Shown piece after piece: positions 5,310-52,362 of a DNA stretch of 64,000 bases (positions are counted from its first letter, which is position 1; every line of letters begins with the position of its first letter). The notes under the pieces were generated by a model. The model had not been told where the DNA came from. It searched no databases and worked only from the letters and a program-made list of their open reading frames with translations. A program made the translations under genes and the position numbers. The DNA is from Prasinococcaceae sp. CCMP 1430. Lineage: Eukaryota; Plantae; Prasinodermophyta. Where the stretch lies: positions 1 through 64,000 of the forward strand of contig RQSC01001045.1 of assembly GCA_013416795.1 (NCBI GenBank), written 5' to 3'.

Positions 5310-5457
5310 CGTTTCGACGTAAAAAGTCTCCCGTGGGACAAAATGATCCTTTGATGCTACAGTAGGTCCCTAGTTCAAAACGCATCGAGCCGCGCCGCGC
5401 GACCTCAGCCTCGGGAGTCGTGTGCGCCACACAGAGCGCGCGGCGCCCCTCCCCCCC

Positions 5458-7721
5458 ATGCGCGCGCGGCCTCGCGCCGGCGCTCTCGGCGCTCTCGGCG
5501 CTGGTGGCGCTCGCGCTGGCGCTGGCGCTCGCGGCCTCCGCCGCCTCAGACGCCGCAGCGGACGCCCTTTCCGCCTCGGCCGCCGACGACACCTTCGGAG
5601 GAGGAGCAGGAGGAGGAGGAGAAGGGGCCTCCTCCACAGCAGCAGCAGCAGCAACAGCAACAGCAACCACAACAGCAGCAACCACAACAACAACAACAAC
5701 GACGATCGCCCAAGTCACCGACGACCTCAAGGCCGACGAGGAGAGCGTCGAGCTCGGCCTCGCTCAGGACGCGAGCTCGGACCACAAGACGATCACCTCG
5801 CTCATCGACAGCGCGCTCGAGAAGGAGTTCCGCAAGGACGAGCTGCTCGAGGAGCAGGGCAAGGCGGGCGGCACCGCGGGGCGCTCGTTCAACAAGTCGG
5901 TGACGCAGGCGACGGCGGTCCTCGAGACGGTGGCGCGCGTGACGACGGACCGCAAGGAGCAGCGGGAGGCCCCCGAGCGGGAGGAGGGCGCCTCCGACAA
6001 GGGCGGCGGCGGCGGCGGCGCCGCGTCCGGCGCGTCGTCGTCGGCGGGCGCCAACGCCCCCTCGTCCAAATATAAGGCGGCCCCAGGAGGGGGCGCCCCC
6101 GGAACAGCGCCCGCCTCGTGGTCGCTGTACGGCATGATGCAGGCGATCGAGGCGCTCGCGGCAAGCAACGGCCTCACGTCCGCCCCCGACGTCGGCGAGG
6201 ACGTCGCGCGGCTCATCGACTCGCAGGACAACGAGTACGTGCTGTCGTCGCCCAAGCGCGCCATGGAGCTGCAGCAGGACCTGCGCCTCATCGCCGACTT
6301 CGTGACCATCGTCACCGCCGCCGCGGTGGGCGGGCTGCTGTTCGCCATGGCGGGCCAGCCGATGATCACGGGCTACCTCGTGGCGGGCGCGTGCGTCGGG
6401 CCGGGCGGCATGGGCGTCATCAAGGAGCTCGTGCAGGTGGAGACCCTCAGCCAGGTGGGCGTGGTGCTGCTGCTCTTCTGCCTGGGGCTCGAGTTCTCCA
6501 TGGCCAAGCTGCGCGCGGTGCGCGGCGTGGCCGTCGGCGGCGGGCTCCTGCAGGTGGGCATGCTCATGCTCATGATCGGCGCCACGTCGAAGAGCCTGGG
6601 CGCGCCCGTGGCGGAGGGCGTCTTCATCGGCGCGTTCCTCTCGATGTCGAGCACCGCGGTGGTGCTCAAGCTGTGCGCCGAGCGCGACGCCATGGCCACC
6701 GTGTACGGGCAGATCACCATCGGCACGCTCGTCACCCAGGACGTGCTCGTCGGGGTGCTCTTCGCGCTGCTCCCCGTGCTGGGGGGGTCGGGCGACGTGC
6801 AGGGCGGCTTCGCCGCGATGGCGGGCCTCGCGCTCAGGATGGCGCTCTTCCTGGCGGGCGCGCTGCTGCTGTCGCGCAGGGCCGTGGGGCCCTTCCTGCG
6901 CGCGCTGCAGCTGATCTCCGGCCGCTCGGGCGGCGAGGAGCTCTTCCAGATGGTGGTGGTCGCCTTCTGCCTAGTGGTCGCGTGGGCGAGCGACGCGCTC
7001 GGCCTGTCGATTGAGATGGGCGCCTTCGTCGCGGGGACCATGATATCGAGCACCGAGCACGCGCAGCGCACGCTGCACCACGTTGAGCCCATCCGCAACC
7101 TGTTCGCGGCCATGTTCCTCGCGAGCATCGGCATGGTCATCAACCCCTCCTTCCTGTGGCTGCACCTGGACATCCTGTTGGTGCGTGCGGGGCGGCGCAG
7201 CCCCCGGCGGCGGCGGCCGCCGCCTGCGAAGGGACGCCGCGGACAACGCCGCGATGCCGCCGTGCTGACGCGCGCCCCATCTCCCCTCGCCTCCCGTGTG
7301 CAACCCCCTCGTGTGCCTCCCACGCCACCCCCACCCACCCACCCACCCACCAAAAAAACACCAAAAAAAATAGCTGAGCTTGCTGCTGGTGATCGTCGCC
7401 AAGACGGCCATGTTTGGCGTGGTGGTGCGGTCGTTCGGCTACTCCTCGGTGGTGGCGCTGCAGGTGGGCATGTCGATGTCGCAGATCGGCGAGTTCGCCT
7501 TCGTGCTGCTCTCGCGGGCGAGCGCGCTCGGGCTGGTGCACCACCGCCTGTACCTGCTGCTGCTCGGGACCACCGCGCTCTCGCTGGTGACCACGCCGGT
7601 CGTGTTCTACTTGATGCCGCACATGGTGCGCCTCGGCGTGCGCTCGCGCTTCCTGCTGCCGGACGACCCGCAGGCCGGCCAGGCCGCGCGGAGGCACGGC
7701 GCGCCCAAGACCAGGGTGTGA
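5458..7721 (+). CDS. KEA: K+/H+ efflux antiporter, CPA2 family (KEA4/5/6-type); intron 7181-7373; ATG 5458 is out of frame with the body
   Basis: LIDSQDNEYVLS..LQQDLRLIAD, QVETLSQVGVVLLLFCLGLEFS, FLSMSSTAVVLK, IGTLVTQD, GLSIEMGAFVAG, HVEPIRNLFAAMFLASIG, MSQIGEFAFVL. Splicing joins HLDILL to LSLLLVIVAK. Confidence 0.92.
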
Positions 7722-7997
7722 CCGACCGCCAGCCCGGGGCGGCGGCGCGCGTGCGCGCTGGGCCTGCCTGCATCCCTTGTAAACTACTCCGTTGTACATA
7801 CACACCACGCGCGCCGACCGGCCGACCGGCCTCTGCGGGAGGAGGTAGGCGCCTCGCGCCATCGCTCGTTACACATGGCGCGCCCGCCCGCGTTCGGTGG
7901 TGTTCGCTGCTCTCGTGGGAGCCGCGCGCGCGCGCGCGCGCGCTGCGTGCTGCTCGGCGCTGGGGTAAGAAAAGACACCCCCGCCCGTCGAGGGCGC

Positions 7998-8070
7998 GTC
8001 GGCGCTCCGCGGTGCCCGCCGAGGGTGGCGAGGGAGCCGTGAGCCCGCTTTCACCGGCGGAGCGCGTCAT
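7998..8070 (-). promoter_or_regulatory. Candidate SECIS element in the glutaredoxin 3'UTR
   Basis: Minus strand reads ATGAC-GCGCTCCGC-C-GGTG-AAA-(~34 nt)-CACC-GCGGAGCGC-CGAC: a perfect 9+4 bp helix, a UGA/GA core and unpaired AAA. It lies between the stop (8200) and TGTAA (7873-7869). The apical part is longer than canonical. Confidence 0.6.
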
Positions 8071-8199
8071 CGTGCGCTGAGCAGAGCAGCCCGCCGACCC
8101 GTGCAGCGCGCGCATCTCAGCCAGTCTCTCCATTCTCGGCCCTGATGGCCTCCTGACGACTCGGCCCCCCGTCTCGACGCGCCCCATCGTCTTCTCGAG

Positions 8200-8708
8200 C
8201 TAGGCCTTGCGCACGGCCGGCGAGCACCTCTCCAGGTACGTCTCCAGGCTGCCGTCTGCCACGACCGTCATCAGGCCCGGGCCGTCGTTGCAGCCGCCGA
8301 TGAACTCGCCGCCGATGAAGATGGCCGGCACGCTCGTGCGGTTGACGCGCGCCGCGAGCTCGGCGCGCAGCGGGGCGCCGTCGGGATCGGCGTCCGCGCC
8401 CGTGAGCTCAATCGCGGTGTAGTTCAGGCCAAGGCGGTCGAGTTCCGCCTTGGCCTGCACGCAGAAGGGTCACGTGGGGAAGGAGAGCATCAGGATGTCC
8501 GTGGTGTTGATGAGGTCCTCGAGGCGACCGCGCACGCGCTCGACGTCGTAGTCGCCCGCGGCGCTGCGCGCGGCCGCGCGGGCGCTCGAGGAGGCGGAGG
8601 AGGCGGTGGCAGAGCGCGGCGGGGAGGGAGGAGATGACGGAGGAGGCGGACAGGGAGGAGGGGAAGATGGCGAGCGGCGGGTACGTGCGTGCGAGCGCCG
8701 CGGAGCGC
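8200..8708 (-). CDS. GRX: Selenocysteine-containing glutaredoxin (active site TUPFC); 5' exon not located
   Basis: Continuous frame DYDVERVRGRLEDLINTTDILMLSFPT-[TGA 8472-8470]-PFCVQAKAEL..RTSVPAIFIGGEFIGGCND; upstream CTAAC branch point and CGCAG acceptor at 8709. Confidence 0.85.
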
Positions 8709-8763
8709 CTGCGATCGCCGCGTGGGGGTGTTAGCGCGTGTGTATACGCTTGCGTGTGAGCCT

Positions 8764-8764
<1 letters not shown>

Positions 8765-8815
<51 letters not shown>

Positions 8816-8940
8816 GTGTGCGTGTTTGTGTGTGTGTGTGCGCGCGCGCGCGCATGCGCGTGTGTGTGCGCGCACGTGTGTCTGCGCGCGCGCCATTGTG
8901 CTTGCGTCTGCGTGTGCGCGCGTGCGCGCGCGTGTGCTAC
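8765..8940. repeat. (TG)n/(CG)n microsatellite tract
   Basis: Pure TG run about 8765-8810 followed by degenerate TG/CG alternation. Confidence 0.9.
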
Positions 8941-9012: not shown

Positions 9013-9682
9013 GGGGCGTGTGTGTGGCAGCCGCTGCTGCGCCGCCTGCGGTCGCTGCGCGAGACGCTGGTGAGCCACCGCGACTTCGGCGCGCGCGCCG
9101 CCGCCGCGTGCGAGCTGAGCGTCGACGTGTGCGCGCGCGCCGGCGGCTGGGGGTGGGGGGAGATGCTCAAGGCGATGGCGCACCTGCTGGGAGAGGTCTA
9201 CCCGCGCGGCGGAGGTGCGGCGCGAGCGAGCGCACGAACACACCCACACACGCACACACACACAAACGCACAATCACACACAATCACACACGGCCTCGCG
9301 CGAGGTACACACGTGCACACGCACCTGCGCGTGCGCACGCCCGCGCTGACGCGCGCGCGCCCGCGCGCTGCCCGCAGGCGCGTTCCCGCGCGAGGCGGAG
9401 ATGCACGCGGCGTCGGCGGCGTACTTCGCGTGCGTGGCGGGCGACGCCGCCGAGTTCGGCCGCGCGCTCGCAAGGGCGCAGGCGCACGCGCACACGCACG
9501 CACACGCGTGCACGCACGGCGGCGACGGCATGCGCGCGTGGGCGGCGCGCGTGGGCGCGGCGAGGCGGGCCGCGCGCGCGGAAAGGGACGGCGGCGCGTC
9601 AGCAGCGCCCAGCGGCCCCCACCGGCTCCCTCGGCGATGCGCGCGCGCGAGACGCGGCCGCGCGCGAGCGATGAAGAAATGA
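9013..9682 (+). CDS. Two-exon fragment (intron 9215-9377), possibly SAC3/GANP/PCI-like; 5' exons missing
   Basis: CTGAC plus GCAG acceptor at 9012. Splicing is in phase: LRRLRSLRETLVS..CELSVDV..EMLKAMAHLLGEVYPRGG then AFPREAEMHAASAAYFAC. The family call is weak. Confidence 0.45.
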
Positions 9683-9722: not shown

Positions 9723-11017
9723 CTGCCAGCCCACGCCTGTGAAGAGCTCCGAGTGCGAGGACGGGCTCATGTCCACGTACACCTGCAGCCCACGCAGCTG
9801 GTCGCGCAGCGCTCGCAGCTCGGGATCGCCGCGCTCGTCCTTCTCGAGCACCAGCACGGTGGGGAGGTTGTTGCGCGTCTTGATCGCGGTCGAGCGCACC
9901 AGCCGGAAGGTGCCGCTCGCCGAGGCGAACGCGCGCGCGACGTCCTGCGGCGGACGGCGAGGCGCTCCGTCAGGCTCAGCGCGAAGGCGCGGTCGCCGCG
10001 CTCGCGCGCAGGCTCGCCGCCGCGCGACAGCCGGCCGGGCGCGCCGCGCGTCACCCACCAGGAACAGGAAACCTCGCAACACCAGCACCACGAGCCGCCC
10101 GCCGGGTCTGAGCAGTTGCCAGGCGGTCTTGAGCAGCGCTCGGTACATCGTCTTGAGGTCGGAGCCCTTGCCGGTCTGCACCCCCCACGGGGGATTGCTC
10201 ACCACCGCGTCCACGAGCGTGCCCTTGGGCACGGTGAAGAGCGCAGCGGCGACGTCCGCGCGCGAGCAGTGGACGCGCCCCTCGAAGCCCGCCGCCTCGG
10301 CGTTCGCCAGCGTCCCCTTGCACGCGTTGGCGTTGGCGTCGGCGCCGTAGGCGGTGCTCGCCAATCCGGCGTCGAGAGCCTCGAGCAAGATGGTGCCGCT
10401 CCCACAGAAGGGGTCGAGCACGGCCCCGGAGCCGTCCGCGGGCAGGCCGGCCTCGCGCAGCATGGCGTACGCGACGTTGGCCTTGATGGTGACCTTGTTG
10501 AGGTAGGCGGCCTTGTGGCGCCTGCTGAGCGCCTCCTCGTGCAGCTGGGTGCTGAGGGCGAGCGTCTCGCCCACGCAGTCGGCGCGCACGTGGACGTCGT
10601 AGCCGCGCATGCGCGGGGCGCAGCCGTACCGGTCGTGCAGGCAGCCGCCCACGACGCGCGCGAGCTCCCCGCTGTTGAAGCGGTGCGCCTTGCCCGTGCG
10701 CCAGCCCGTCACGCGGAACGACGCGGCGCCCTCGAGCGTGGGCACGCGCACGCGCCCCGCCGGCAGCGCGGACTCGAGCCACAGCTCGAGGGCGCGGAGC
10801 GCGGGGGAGGTCGCGAGCGACTCGCCCTCGGCCGGTCCGCCCTCGCCCTCGCCCTCGCCCTCGCCCTCGCCCTCGGTCTCGCCCTCGGTCTCGCCCGCCG
10901 CGGGCATCGCGATGACAGCGTGGAGCTCGCACACGTAGTGCACCGAGCGGAGCTCGAGCAGCGCCCGCTTGGCGGCGAGGAGCGCGCCCTCGCCGGCCGC
11001 CGCGGGCACGCGCACGC
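9723..11017 (-). CDS. THUMP-domain SAM-dependent RNA methyltransferase (UPF0020/Trm11-Trm14-like); 5' end in gap; intron 9945-10058; 3' end uncertain
   Basis: FRVTGWRTGKAHRFNS, LSRRHK..KANVAYAML, VLDPFCGSGTILLE, VVSNPPWG, LLRPGGRLVVL. Confidence 0.85.
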
Positions 11018-11825
11018 NNNNNNNNNNNNNNNNNNNNNNNNNNNNNNNNNNNNNNNNNNNNNNNNNNNNNNNNNNNNNNNNNNNNNNNNNNNNNNNNNNN
11101 NNNNNNNNNNNNNNNNNNNNNNNNNNNNNNNNNNNNNNNNNNNNNNNNNNNNNNNNNNNNNNNNNNNNNNNNNNNNNNNNNNNNNNNNNNNNNNNNNNNN
11201 NNNNNNNNNNNNNNNNNNNNNNNNNNNNNNNNNNNNNNNNNNNNNNNNNNNNNNNNNNNNNNNNNNNNNNNNNNNNNNNNNNNNNNNNNNNNNNNNNNNN
11301 NNNNNNNNNNNNNNNNNNNNNNNNNNNNNNNNNNNNNNNNNNNNNNNNNNNNNNNNNNNNNNNNNNNNNNNNNNNNNNNNNNNNNNNNNNNNNNNNNNNN
11401 NNNNNNNNNNNNNNNNNNNNNNNNNNNNNNNNNNNNNNNNNNNNNNNNNNNNNNNNNNNNNNNNNNNNNNNNNNNNNNNNNNNNNNNNNNNNNNNNNNNN
11501 NNNNNNNNNNNNNNNNNNNNNNNNNNNNNNNNNNNNNNNNNNNNNNNNNNNNNNNNNNNNNNNNNNNNNNNNNNNNNNNNNNNNNNNNNNNNNNNNNNNN
11601 NNNNNNNNNNNNNNNNNNNNNNNNNNNNNNNNNNNNNNNNNNNNNNNNNNNNNNNNNNNNNNNNNNNNNNNNNNNNNNNNNNNNNNNNNNNNNNNNNNNN
11701 NNNNNNNNNNNNNNNNNNNNNNNNNNNNNNNNNNNNNNNNNNNNNNNNNNNNNNNNNNNNNNNNNNNNNNNNNNNNNNNNNNNNNNNNNNNNNNNNNNNN
11801 NNNNNNNNNNNNNNNNNNNNNNNNN
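11018..11825. other. Assembly gap
   Basis: Run of N. Confidence 1.
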
Positions 11826-13431
11826 CAAGGCGGCGCTCGCGGCGCTCGACGCGGCGGCGCTCGGGGCGGGCGCGCCGAGCCGCTTCTCGCGGCGGGCCAA
11901 CGTGTACTCGCGCCTCGACCACCACGAGGCGCTCGAGGCGCGCCCCAAGGGGACGTGCGCGTCGGTGCTGGACGCCATCGGCAACACCCCGCTCGTCCGC
12001 CTGCGCAACATCGAGAAGGCCGAGGGGCTGGCCTGCGAGGTGTACGCCAAGTGCGAGTTCCTCAACGCGGGCGGCTCGGTGAAGGACCGCATCGCCAAGC
12101 GCATGGTGGAGGACGCCGAGGCCAAGGGGCTGTTGCAGCCGGGCGACACCATCATCGAGCCCACGAGCGGCAACACGGGCATCGGCCTCGCGCTCGCCGC
12201 GGCCGTCAAGGGCTACCACTGCATCGTGGTGATGCCCGAGAAGATGTCCAAGGAGAAGGCGGATGTGCTCAATGCGCTGGGCGCGAAGATCGTACGCACT
12301 CCCAACGAGGCGGCCTGGGACGCGCCCGACTCTCACATCTCTGTGGCCGCGCGCCTCAACTCGGAGACGCCCCGCTCGCACATTCTCGATCAGTACACCA
12401 ACGTGGGCAACCCGCTCGCGCACTACGACGGCACGGGCGCCGAGATCCTCGAGCAGATGGACAACAGGGTCGACGTGCTCGTGGCCGGCGCGGGCACGGG
12501 CGGCACGCTCACCGGCACGGCCAGGCGCGTGCTCGAGGGCTGCCCCAACGCGCGCGTGGTGGGGGTCGACCCGCTGGGATCCATCCTCGCGCTCCCCGAG
12601 AGCCTGAACACCTCCGAGGAGAACGTGTCGCAGGGTATGTACCAGGTGGAGGGCATCGGCTACGACTTCATCCCGGCGGTGCTCGACCGCGAGGTGGCGC
12701 ACGAGTGGGTCAAGTGCAACGACGAGCAGGCCTTCCGCTGGGCGCGGAGGCTCATGCGCGAGGAGGGGCTGCTGTGCGGCGGCTCGAGCGGCGCGGCGTT
12801 CTCGGTGGCCATCGGCGAGGCGCGCAAGCTCAAGGCCGGCGAGCGACTGGTGGTGGTGCTGCCCGATTCCATCCGCAACTACATGACCAAGCACCTCGAC
12901 GACGACTGGATGGTGGAGAAGGGCTTCATGCAGGCGTCCGCCGTCGGAGACCGCTCGCAGCCGTGGGCGGCCAACACCGTCAGCGAGCTCGCGCTCGAGT
13001 CGCCCGTCACCATCTCTCCCGGCATCGCCCTGAGGCGCGCGGTGGAGATAATGAACGCCAAGGGCTTCGACCAGCTGCCCGTCGTGGACGTTGGCGGACG
13101 CGTGATGGGAGTGGTGACCGAGGGCAACATCTCAGCCAAGGTGACGAGCGGCGCGGCCTCGCTGGACGACCCCGTCGAAACCATCGTGTACAAGGACGTC
13201 GCGCGCGTGCTCAGCTCCACCACGCTCGCAGAGCTCTCGCGGAAGTTCAACCGCTATCACTTTGCGCTGGTGACGCGCAACCAGACCCGCTACTCCAACG
13301 CCGGCGAGGAGATCCACACGATGGTGACGGCCGTGGTGACGCGCATCGACCTGCTCAAGTTCATCTCCGCCAAGGCGCAGCATGGGCGCGCCGCCAACGG
13401 CGTCGCCACGGACGTCGCGCCGTGCGCGTGA
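11826..13431 (+). CDS. CBS: Cystathionine beta-synthase with C-terminal CBS (Bateman) pair; start in gap
   Basis: [23 protein letters not shown] (PLP lysine), [66 protein letters not shown]. Confidence 0.95.
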
Positions 13432-49399: not shown

Positions 49400-52362
49400 A
49401 TGGGCTCTCCAGCGGCGGGAAGCCGCGCGCGGCGGGCGCGTGTGCTGCTCGCGTTGTCGAGCTTTGCGTTCGTCCAGGGGCTCACGCACTCGGGGCTTAC
49501 TGCGGCGACGCTCTCCAGCATTACTCGGCGGTACGGCTTCAGCAATGTGCAGGCAGGCTTTCTGCTCGCCGGCTATGACTTTGCCGCGGCAGTTGCGGGC
49601 ACCGTCATCGCGCTCGCCATAGCCGCGGCGCAGCGGAGGCGCCGCCCGCACGCAGACGCCCGGGGCATTCGCGACGAGGACGCAGGCACTCGCATGGCAG
49701 CGGAGGAAGAAAGCAGAGCCAACCGCGACCTGGGCGATAGCAATCCTTCGATCTCATTCGAGGACGGCGAGGGACCGCAAATGTCAGCTCCACGCGCGTT
49801 GCGTGCGCCCACTGGGCGCCGGCAGCGCTTCGCCTGGGTGCCAATGGAGGGCGGGCACAGCAATGCCAAGCGTGGGCCGATTGGCCGCACGCTGGCACCT
49901 TTGCGAACTTTGGCGGCTTCAATTGCCAACTCATGCTGCTGTTGGTGCTCTGGCTGCGTGATGTGCGCACGCGCCTTCTTTTCCAGCAAAGAGGCAGTGC
50001 TGACCGTGGGTCTAGCGCTCTTCGCTCTGGGGTCGTTTATGTATGGCGCCCCACAGCTCGCACACGGGACGTATGGGGTGCCAGAGCAGACTGTGCACAC
50101 GTGTTCCCCTTCTGCGCAGCTCGGCCTTGCACCAGCACCGGCGCCGGCACCCGCGCCGACGCCAGTCGCAGTTGGAGTCAACGCGAGCGGCAATGCGACG
50201 AGCAACGGCGGCGACGTCAACGAAGAGCAATGCGACAACGTCATCACAAGCGGCGGTGAGCTGTATGCGCTCTTCATGGTCGCGCAGATCATCCTTGGCA
50301 TTGGTGCGTCGCCCCTCTTCACCGTCGGGCCGTCTTTCATCGATGACGTATACGAGGGCAGTGCCTCCGTGAACACGGCCCTCGGGCTCTTTTTCGGCGC
50401 CTCCGCCCTCGGCCCCGCCGTCGGTTTTGTACTCGGGGGCATCACACTCGCTACCTGGATCGATGGGGACAGCGCCCAGCCTCCTGGCATCCAGCAAGAA
50501 TCACGCTTTTGGGTGGGCCAATGGTTCGTCGGCTTCTGGATTAGCGCGGTGGCCGGCGCGGCACTGCTTCTGCCCTTCGCGCTTGCTCTCTTTATAGGGC
50601 GACGGCGCGGGGCGCCTCAAGACAACACCGTAGCGCCGGAGGAGAACGGCATTGAGTTGCCGCCGTCCTTATATTCGAGTGCTGCCACTGCAGACCCTGA
50701 ATCATTGGAGGCGCTGGCACGCAACGGCGTCTCTGCGTCCGTGCACGTCAATGGTGCCGCCGAGCATGATCGCGAGGACGACGACGACGCCACAAGGGCG
50801 AACCCACTAGGACGTCAAACCAATGGCGATGAGCAAGATGCCGCACACATAGATACAAACGGTGGCGACGAGGGCTCTGCTCGTGCCGGCGGTGGAGCGG
50901 AGCAGATCGATCGACGTGGACAGCAGCAGCCACAGAGCGACGATGGGTCGGGAGATCACGCGGGTGGCAGGCCCGGGCTCGTTTCAGGGACATTCATTGC
51001 GTTGATCGCCGCGCTCAGCTTTGAGGTGCTGGGGAAGAGTGCCATCGTCCCTTTCGTCCCTCTCGTCGTTCAGGAGACATTTGGTGTCTCGTCTTCATCT
51101 GCGAGCTACATGGGTCCGTTTGTGTCGCTCGCCGTGTGCGATGAACGTATCGCCCATGCCGACTCATGCACACCCGCGCACGCCACGCCCGCGCTGCGAG
51201 ACCTGTCGCTGACGAACGGCGCTGCGTCGGCGCACCAACCTGCGCTCCTCTTGGTGACTGGCGCCTCAAATATTGACGCGTTGGGATGACACGCGCAGTG
51301 GGTGTGGTTCTTGTGCCCGCAGCCATCTTGGGGACAATCGCGGGTGGCGTGCTAGTCATGAAGACCAAAATGAGTATCAGATCGCAAATAATGTTGTGCG
51401 CAGTCACGGTCTTCCTGGGAGCGTGCGTCTTCACGGCAGCGTCCTTTACGATGGTAGCATGCGACGAGCTCGACTTCGCTGGCATCAACGCCCCCGCCGC
51501 ATCTGACTCCGCAAACGGGACGCACGTGGGCCTGTGGCCGCACCTCCCCCACTTTGGCTCTCTCTTTGGCAATAGGACGAAGCCTGGTGACGAGCGTTTC
51601 GAGGACACGTGCAACGCTGGCTGCGATTGTGAGATCGAATATCAACCTGTGTGCTCGACCACAGACGGCACGACGTACTTGAACGGCTGCGTTGCCGGCT
51701 GCGAGAACGCCACAGCAAATGACGAGGGGGTGCCGACTGCTTACAGCAACTGCACATGCGCCCCTTCGGACGGCCGCGATGCCGTCGTGCCAGGGGAGTG
51801 TTCGCGCACGTGCGCGGCACTCTATGGATTCCTGTCTCTGCTGTTCGTGGCAATATTTCTGGTTTTCCTCAACGCGTCGCCGGTCATGAAGGTCTTCATG
51901 GAGTGCGCCGGAGCCCCGCACACACGCACGCTGAGCCTCGCCTTGGGCGCTCTGGCCTACCGCTTGTTCGGCGCCATCCCCGGACCGGTACTCGAAGGGC
52001 TCCTGCTCGACGACGCCTGCCGATACGAGTCGCCGTGTTCTAACGCCTGCTTGGTGCATGATCCGCACGGAGTGCGCGTTGCCATCACGTCCTTCCCGCT
52101 GTCCGCAATGGGGATGAGCGCGATTTTGTACGTTGTCGCGTGGCGCTTGCACGGCATGAAGCGGCGCCTTGACGTCGGGTGCCTGATTGTTGGTGCCGGT
52201 TGCGTGATCGGCATACTGGCGTCACTGCGCTCTCTCTTCAGATGGAAGCGGCGACGGGTCATCCCTCACGAGGGGGACGCCGAACAGCTGATACAAGGGG
52301 CAGGCGGCGCCAGCTCCGAGCGCGATCCAGAATTTGCCGGCGCAGATGTTTCGGAGGCATGA
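49400..52362 (+). CDS. OATP/SLCO organic anion transporter with Kazal-type loop; intron 51114-51298
   Basis: SSITRRYG..GYD, AQIILGIGASPLFTVGPSFIDD, LGPAVGFVLGG, WVGQWFVGF, CNAGCDC..YQPVCS..TYLNGCVAGC, RLFGAIPGPVLEGLLLDDAC. Confidence 0.9.

Follow-up and report, generated by a model that had tools for sequence, protein, structure and literature searches.

Does an in-frame TGA in a glutaredoxin (Grx) gene of the green alga Prasinoderma coloniale (Prasinodermophyta) bring the protein to an end, or does it specify selenocysteine (Sec) at the heart of the active site? The question is raised by a locus on the minus strand of the 64-kb stretch of DNA analysed here (referred to as the window, with a base composition of about 70% G+C, and to which all coordinates refer). 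Gene callers report at this place an 86-aa ORF (8200..8460, minus strand) that takes a GTG past the active site as its start, and a preliminary description of the sequence had proposed that this ORF is the remnant of a selenoglutaredoxin cut short by annotation. As argued below, it is very probable that the locus is a nuclear gene for a class I (dithiol-type) glutaredoxin with a predicted Sec as its attacking residue, encoded by UGA at 8472-8470 with the assistance of a SECIS element.

The reading frame and its glutaredoxin identity

Translation of the minus strand reveals a frame that extends from 8577 to a TAG at 8202-8200 and contains a single in-frame TGA, at 8472-8470. The preliminary description, which had traced the frame upstream through one TGA and had noticed that the listed ORF (beginning with the GTG at 8460) starts after the active site, was therefore accurate to the base. 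The order of elements along the frame is ...AGDYDVERVRGRLEDLINTTDILMLSFPT-TGA-PFCVQAKAEL...RTSVPAIFIGGEFIGGCNDG...RKA-TAG or, in a fuller form, AGDYDVERVRGRLEDLINTTDILMLSFPT - TGA - PFCVQAKAELDRLGLNYTAIELTG...RTSVPAIFIGGEFIGGCNDGPG...CSPAVRKA - TAG. This part of the gene (exon 2; 8200..8577, minus strand) consists of 125 codons, including the Sec codon, followed by the TAG; it accommodates the whole Grx fold, and is colinear, with no frame gaps, with the intronless relative L015.

The active sites of dithiol glutaredoxins read CPYC or CPFC, and the TGA (8470..8472, minus strand, in the context ACG TGA CCC) occupies the column of the first of the two cysteines. The motif that results, U-P-F-C (8461..8472, minus strand; TGA CCC TTC TGC), aligns with the C-P-F/Y-C of Cys-type relatives (P0002-P0004, P0008 and 34 JGI loci), and the segment comprising strand 1 and the active site, ILMLSFPT-U-PFC, corresponds column for column to LMLSFTT-C-PFC in such relatives. 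Both glutathione-binding motifs of glutaredoxins follow on the same strand: T-S-V-P (8326..8337) represents the TVP (cis-Pro) motif and G-G-C-N-D (8284..8298) the GG-x-x-D motif, and the residues concerned (R44 T45 S46 V47 P48, and columns G58-D62) are invariant in our alignment A2.

All similarity searches were made with the pieces on either side of the TGA separately, and never with a read-through protein (read-through translations were used for display only, and the Sec/Cys column was given as X for the tree). The piece after the TGA matches the Pfam family Glutaredoxin (PF00462) with an E value of 4.8e-11 and 43 bits (cut-off 22.9), over profile positions 10-60 of 60. Since the match begins at profile position 10, it must be the upstream side of the TGA that provides strand 1 and the first residue of the active site. 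Among solved structures, the matches of the same piece are to dithiol glutaredoxins (PDB 5zvl best, and also 5gtx, 5kqa and 1fov; down to E 1.8e-9), while the NCBIfam families Grx3 and GRX_euk are matched with E about 1e-10, under their equivalog cut-offs, partly because just a piece was scored. The stretch before the TGA is also conserved: in a tblastn search of the 64-kb window, the N-terminal piece of L015 matches 8556-8473 with an E value of 1.6e-7, and that of L009 gives a match with E 4.7e-4. The suggestion that Grx-like sequence lies on both sides of the TGA has thus held good, with PF00462 on the downstream side and L015 on the upstream side.

Relatives with TGA or a cysteine codon at the active site

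What do related genes have in place of the TGA? A scan of JGI metagenomes with an alignment of C-terminal pieces returned 80 loci, 35 of which have TGA and 34 TGT or TGC at the Sec/Cys column, each with ...LM[LF]SF-x-x in front of it; the conserved flanks can be written as LMLSF-x-x-[U/C]-PFC-x-KAK. Poly(A) tails, which would be proof of transcript origin, were not seen on the JGI contigs. In three more distant lineages (L007-L012), which bring the relatives with TGA to about 40, the codon stands in the context LMLSF-x-K-TGA-PFC-[IV]-KAK, and here the gene calls are split in two, giving an N-terminal and a C-terminal fragment. A search for orthologues with either Cys or TGA at this column was one of the checks named in the preliminary description; homologues of both forms occur among the JGI loci, with further TGA forms in L007-L012.

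The closest relative, L015, is 59% identical to the window protein and has TGA at the same column. The two have in common the active-site region SFP[ST]-U-PFCVQAKAEL, an insertion (ELTG..PDPDG) and the C-terminal CSP-x-VRKA. When the Sec/Cys column was masked, a maximum-likelihood tree placed them as a pair with 99/98 support, on a branch that sits outside an all-Cys clade and outside a large clade of mixed Sec and Cys types; the distribution of Sec and Cys over this tree requires at least four changes.

The subfamily is also characterized by an N-terminal extension of about 45 residues, ..VWYA-x-[LV]AN-x-VQNVL-x-NSPLNE-x-KK......AG-x-YD.. (L008-L012, L015 and exon 1 of L001), for which no Pfam or NCBIfam match was found. 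Window positions 8556-8473 encode the last part of this extension.

The TGA in near-identical wild contigs

A TGC or TGT codon needs just one base change to become TGA, and the codon in the window might conceivably have come about through an error of sequencing, or from a Cys codon by recent nonsense mutation. This is hardly credible, however, in view of the retention of the TGA in 18/18 independent, near-identical ocean metagenome contigs that were read (L001-L006, L013, L014, L095-L104), which come from different samples and, with the window included, fall into three haplotype groups. L015 and 34 other JGI loci likewise have TGA, and a SECIS-like element lies downstream of the gene, both of which also speak against an error or a fresh mutation. 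The wild contigs all have the same neighbour as the window, a gene for a Na+/H+ (CPA-type) exchanger (5420-7721, plus strand; PF00999, E 3e-34) whose orientation is convergent with that of the Grx gene; the locus is therefore orthologous throughout.

Gene callers have uniformly treated the codon as a stop. The truncated 86-aa product P0001, which is 98% identical, was found by word search on ocean metagenome contigs, and 36 blocks of metagenome and Logan assemblies have an index entry for the exact 86-aa ORF of the window (P0014); one or other of these products has been called on more than 30 contigs, and in every contig the gene is cut at the TGA.

The pattern of variation among 13 wild contigs indicates that the sequence around the TGA is under coding constraint. 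Nine of the 104 intron columns are variable, vs one of the 123 columns in the part of exon 2 that contains the TGA (Fisher p 0.006); in the remainder of exon 2, the figure is 4/255. The coding part of exon 2 in the window shows no private substitution relative to the wild contigs.

The public gene model

The 90% cluster to which P0001 belongs includes EukProt entry EP00793_Prasinoderma_coloniale_P000092, which is PRCOL_00005600-RA of the public P. coloniale annotation. This protein (P0013, for which there is no record as a called gene) has 87 aa, made up of MKK joined to AKAELD...RKA, and its last 84 residues are exactly those of the window, which confirms the assignment to P. coloniale. The model takes the Met of ...NEMKK as its start and uses an acceptor at 8454..8455 (minus strand; gtgcag|GCCAAG), so treating as intron the 41 codons from 8577 to 8455, U-P-F-C among them.

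Might the published model nevertheless be right, with 8577-8455 an intron, the TGA untranslated and a product of 87 aa reading MKK-AKAELD from its start? PRCOL_00005600-RA stands in the public annotation, and gtgcag| at 8455 is formally valid as a splice site, but we consider this very improbable. The 41 skipped codons are conserved as protein in L015 and dozens of other relatives; they vary, in the wild contigs, ten times less than the true intron; and the product would be deprived of strand 1 and the entire active site, its Pfam match beginning at profile position 10. Moreover, predictors commonly skip the in-frame TGA of selenoprotein genes, and this is the usual artefact by which such genes come to be wrongly modelled. 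Our preferred reading, that the TGA lies within a translated exon and encodes Sec, amounts to a correction of PRCOL_00005600-RA: as the gene is annotated at present, P. coloniale seems to be without the redox centre of this enzyme. The original proposal of a selenoglutaredoxin shortened by annotation is thus supported from several sides, by the retention of the TGA, the Sec/Cys column, the low variation near the TGA, the SECIS-like hairpin and a public model that has lost its active site.

The missing first exon

Where, then, does the gene begin? In the wild contigs, an upstream exon ending in ...GFVNKLSELVATSPLNEMKK|GT is followed by a 104-nt intron; beyond its acceptor (CCGCAG|) the frame resumes in phase with GCG GCC..., at a point equivalent to window 8577. 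After splicing, the product reads SPLNEMKK-AAARSA-AGDYD, with a spacing identical to that of the intronless L015 (SPINEGKK-WFAKQQ-AGDYD) and of L008-L010. The window ceases to be identical to the wild contigs precisely at 8577/8578 and is without the acceptor CCGCAG, a defect that the preliminary description had not noticed. In place of the 104-nt intron and exon 1 there is non-homologous sequence (8578..8900, minus strand), first CT-rich and of low complexity and then a (CA)n microsatellite.

Exon 1 could not be located elsewhere in the 64-kb window by blastn, for which L001/L003 served as queries, or by tblastn, for which the queries were the exon-1 peptide and N-terminal pieces taken from L008-L010 and L015; a search of the minus strand for ATGAAGAAG or ATGAARAAR likewise gave no match in the 64 kb. 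Between an upstream stop (near 8733) and the TGA, the sole in-frame ATG is that of the Met in ILMLSF, and the gene is without a start codon inside the window. The metagenome contigs all end some 300-340 nt upstream, in (GC)n sequence, and word searches for contigs or peptides reaching further upstream, using the N-terminal piece and the exon-1 frame of L001, gave short contigs or nothing.

The region in which exon 1 and the promoter would be expected is filled by short tandem repeats rich in G+C and by (CA)n/(GT)n microsatellites (8766-8840 and 9233-9291).

The loss of homology to all wild contigs at 8577/8578, together with the loss of the CCGCAG acceptor, the absence of exon 1 and of a minus-strand ATGAARAAR from the 64 kb, and the lack of a usable in-frame ATG, would fit a 5′-truncated dead copy in the sequenced strain, in which exon 1, the intron and the start codon had been lost through a real deletion or rearrangement, while exon 2 with its Sec codon and SECIS still looks intact. 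We think this improbable. The published P. coloniale model starts with M-K-K, which matches the end of exon 1 in the wild contigs (...NEMKK|GT), and from this it follows that the annotated assembly contains exon 1; the coding part of exon 2 has gathered no private substitution; the break falls in extremely GC-rich, microsatellite-rich sequence, where the metagenome assemblies break too; and there are several N runs in the window. One of these, a gap of 808 N (11018-11825), breaks the next gene upstream on the same strand, which encodes an RMKL-like/UPF0020 methyltransferase (9747-12209, minus strand; PF01170, E 1.8e-25), and with further runs of 153, 43 and 280 N and six single Ns it marks the assembly as a gapped draft in this region.

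Most probably, exon 1 is missing through the local collapse of the assembly in a very GC-rich stretch. This appears the likeliest explanation because the annotated assembly must contain M-K-K|GT, and because the metagenome assemblies all break just upstream. The absence of exon 1 is accordingly flagged here as a local defect of this assembly.

A candidate SECIS element

The recoding of UGA as Sec in a eukaryotic gene would call for a SECIS element in the 3′UTR. A distance of 480 nt separates the Grx stop from the convergent stop of the Na+/H+-exchanger gene (7721). Folding and a pattern scan drew attention to a SECIS-like hairpin about 130 nt past the TAG (7986..8084, minus strand), with ATGA at 8070-8067 (the only ATGA in the Grx 3′UTR) and GA at 8000-7999. 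Its helix 2 is formed by 8065-8052 paired with 8015-8002, and comprises 9 bp, a bulged C and a further 4 bp; a C (8066) follows the ATGA, another (8001) precedes the GA, and there is an unpaired AAA at 8051-8049. Two small hairpins form the apex, giving a three-way junction, and helix 1 lies outside the core.

The rule of the scan was ATGA, one free pair, a helix in which at least eight of the following 12 positions are paired and no more than one mismatch is enclosed, and then GA. In the 64-kb window the candidate is the sole minus-strand match. Shuffled sequence gave 2.8 matches per 128 kb, corresponding to 0.01 expected in 480 nt, and at the candidate's own level of pairing the chance expectation in 480 nt falls to 0.002. 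When the scan was applied to the 400 nt after the stop codons of relatives, there were matches in 21 of the 30 distinct Sec-type sequences vs 3 of the 27 of Cys type (p 9e-6), the corresponding numbers for the opposite strand, as a control, being 2/30 and 1/27. The matches also agree in ways that go beyond the scan rule, with G-A before the ATGA, C after it and T before the GA. The core ATGA-C...C-GA-C is common to the window and two GC-rich relatives, L030 and L009, and L015 has a similar hairpin (GTGA-C-GCGCG...CGCGC-T-GA-C), spotted by eye only. Among the wild contigs, no variation occurs in the core or in helix 2, the three variable sites of the element all being apical.

The candidate is nonetheless atypical, in that the AAA comes 15 nt after the ATGA, vs 8-10 nt in AT-rich relatives, its apex is a three-way junction, and its fold is no more stable than that of shuffled sequence (z = -0.4). 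The Rfam SECIS families gave no match in a cmscan of 7300-8900 with E values up to 10; this is uninformative, because 20 related loci, among them several with elements of textbook appearance, were also without a match. A covariance model (R1) built from 17 AT-rich SECIS elements of Sec-type relatives recovered further elements in L049, L044, L047, L035 and L017. It gave no match at 8070-7999, even with the search limited to the 3′UTR, and it also missed the elements of the GC-rich relatives L030, L009 and L015, and is thus biased by composition or lineage. A MAFFT alignment of the four GC-rich elements misaligned their 3′ strands; counts of base pairs within the SECIS set were given no weight, being circular for sequences chosen for their pairing. 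Because both Rfam and R1 pass over relatives with canonical-looking elements, we rate the window hairpin, in spite of these blanks, as a probable rather than a proven SECIS.

Some Cys-type (TGC) relatives, L031, L033 and L034, gave scan matches as well, to a GAATGAC...TGA hairpin about 84 nt past the stop. That of L031 (L031:1530-1606) is matched by R1 with E 0.014, and looks like a fossil SECIS left by a recent change from Sec to Cys.

Elsewhere in the window, a SECIS-like match with 10 pairs (51719-51770, plus strand) was dismissed as a chance occurrence, as it is inside an OATP-family coding ORF; it illustrates the background rate of the scan. The two adjoining ORFs at 49400-52362 (plus strand) match the OATP/SLCO family (PF03137, E 2e-36 and 2e-32), Kazal-like cysteine-rich loop included, and probably represent a single gene that is interrupted near 51286 by an intron or a frameshift. 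OATP/SLCO organic-anion transporters are best known from animals.

Gene structure and a possible mechanism

The complete gene would thus consist of an exon 1 encoding a presequence and a conserved helical extension that ends in ...SPLNEMKK, the 104-nt intron, and an exon 2 that begins at 8577. That the protein may be targeted to an organelle is suggested by the abundance of arginine and alanine at the start of exon 1 in the wild contigs, and by N-termini in L008-L010 that resemble signal peptides. In translation, the UGA would be recoded with the help of the SECIS hairpin some 130 nt beyond the real stop, TAG.

How might the enzyme work? Established glutaredoxin chemistry provides a likely scheme, in which the selenolate would attack glutathionylated or disulfide substrates to give an Se-S intermediate, whose resolution might fall to glutathione or to the second Cys in U-P-F-C. 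The glutathione would presumably be held by the TSVP and GGCND motifs.

Comparison with known selenoproteins and glutaredoxins

Sec-GRX is a described family of algal selenoproteins, but it has been reported solely from selenoprotein-rich SAR species and haptophytes, with none in the Plantae group (Jiang et al. 2020, 'The algal selenoproteomes', PMC7539508). A glutaredoxin ('Glx') is among the selenoproteins of Aureococcus (PMC5917014). Many selenoproteins are reported for P. coloniale in its genome paper, whose main text names no glutaredoxin among them (PMC7455551), and neither GRX nor Prasinoderma figures in Liang et al. 2019.

The window gene resembles the algal Sec-GRX, which are dithiol glutaredoxins with a eukaryotic SECIS in the 3′UTR, in the position of its predicted Sec as the first residue of the active site, in the presence of a candidate SECIS, and in having Cys-type paralogues and orthologues in the same tree, with repeated exchange of Sec and Cys; the apparent fossil SECIS behind the Cys-type L031 has its parallel in the fossils described for other families in PMC7539508. 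It departs from the published examples in coming from a green alga, and from the large mixed Sec/Cys clade in being placed, with L015, on a strongly supported branch of its own. Its membership of the family is suggested by relatives in marine metagenomes that have U-P-F/Y-C glutaredoxins in common, rather than by direct comparison with the published sequences. The gene is thus probably an addition to the known algal Sec-GRX family and, provisionally, may be the first from the green lineage.

A bolder interpretation, to which we would give an even chance, is that this is indeed the first Sec glutaredoxin of the green lineage (Viridiplantae, phylum Prasinodermophyta), that with the uncultured L015 it represents an old branch and no recent transfer from a stramenopile or haptophyte, and that its SECIS is a variant form (with a 13-bp interrupted helix 2 and a three-way apical junction) missed by current models. 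If so, Sec-GRX may predate the split between the green and red lineages, and the selenoproteomes of GC-rich green picoalgae may be under-counted. As read here, the gene extends the range of Sec glutaredoxins from the SAR algae and haptophytes of the published survey to the green lineage, and the fact that a GC-rich candidate SECIS escapes the standard models has a bearing on selenoprotein counts in GC-rich picoalgae. What is known of the way in which selenoproteins or glutaredoxins work is unchanged by it.

Bacterial glutaredoxin-like selenoproteins (for example NCBIfam NF041212, 'Uxx-star', and marine-metagenome Grx-like selenoproteins, PMC2398784) likewise combine a thioredoxin fold with Sec in a redox motif, but they differ from the window gene in having bacterial in-frame SECIS hairpins and different motifs. 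In our searches, NF041212 matched the Cys-type P0003 alone, and weakly (E 2.7e-5), and the window piece was unmatched.

The window protein resembles the class I dithiol glutaredoxins (Grx3/GrxC, with CPYC or CPFC) in that it belongs to the same PF00462 fold family and has the -PFC- half-site, TVP and GG-x-x-D; it differs in the predicted replacement of the nucleophilic Cys by Sec, in the conserved N-terminal extension (about 45 residues) of its subfamily, and in an insertion of 4-5 residues (ELTGADADPDG) that is confined to the window and L015. Synthetic analogues of seleno-glutaredoxin 3, which are artificial proteins and not the products of genes, have Sec at the attacking position of a Grx3-type scaffold, and provide a model from which a lower redox potential and more rapid exchange might be expected of the algal enzyme.
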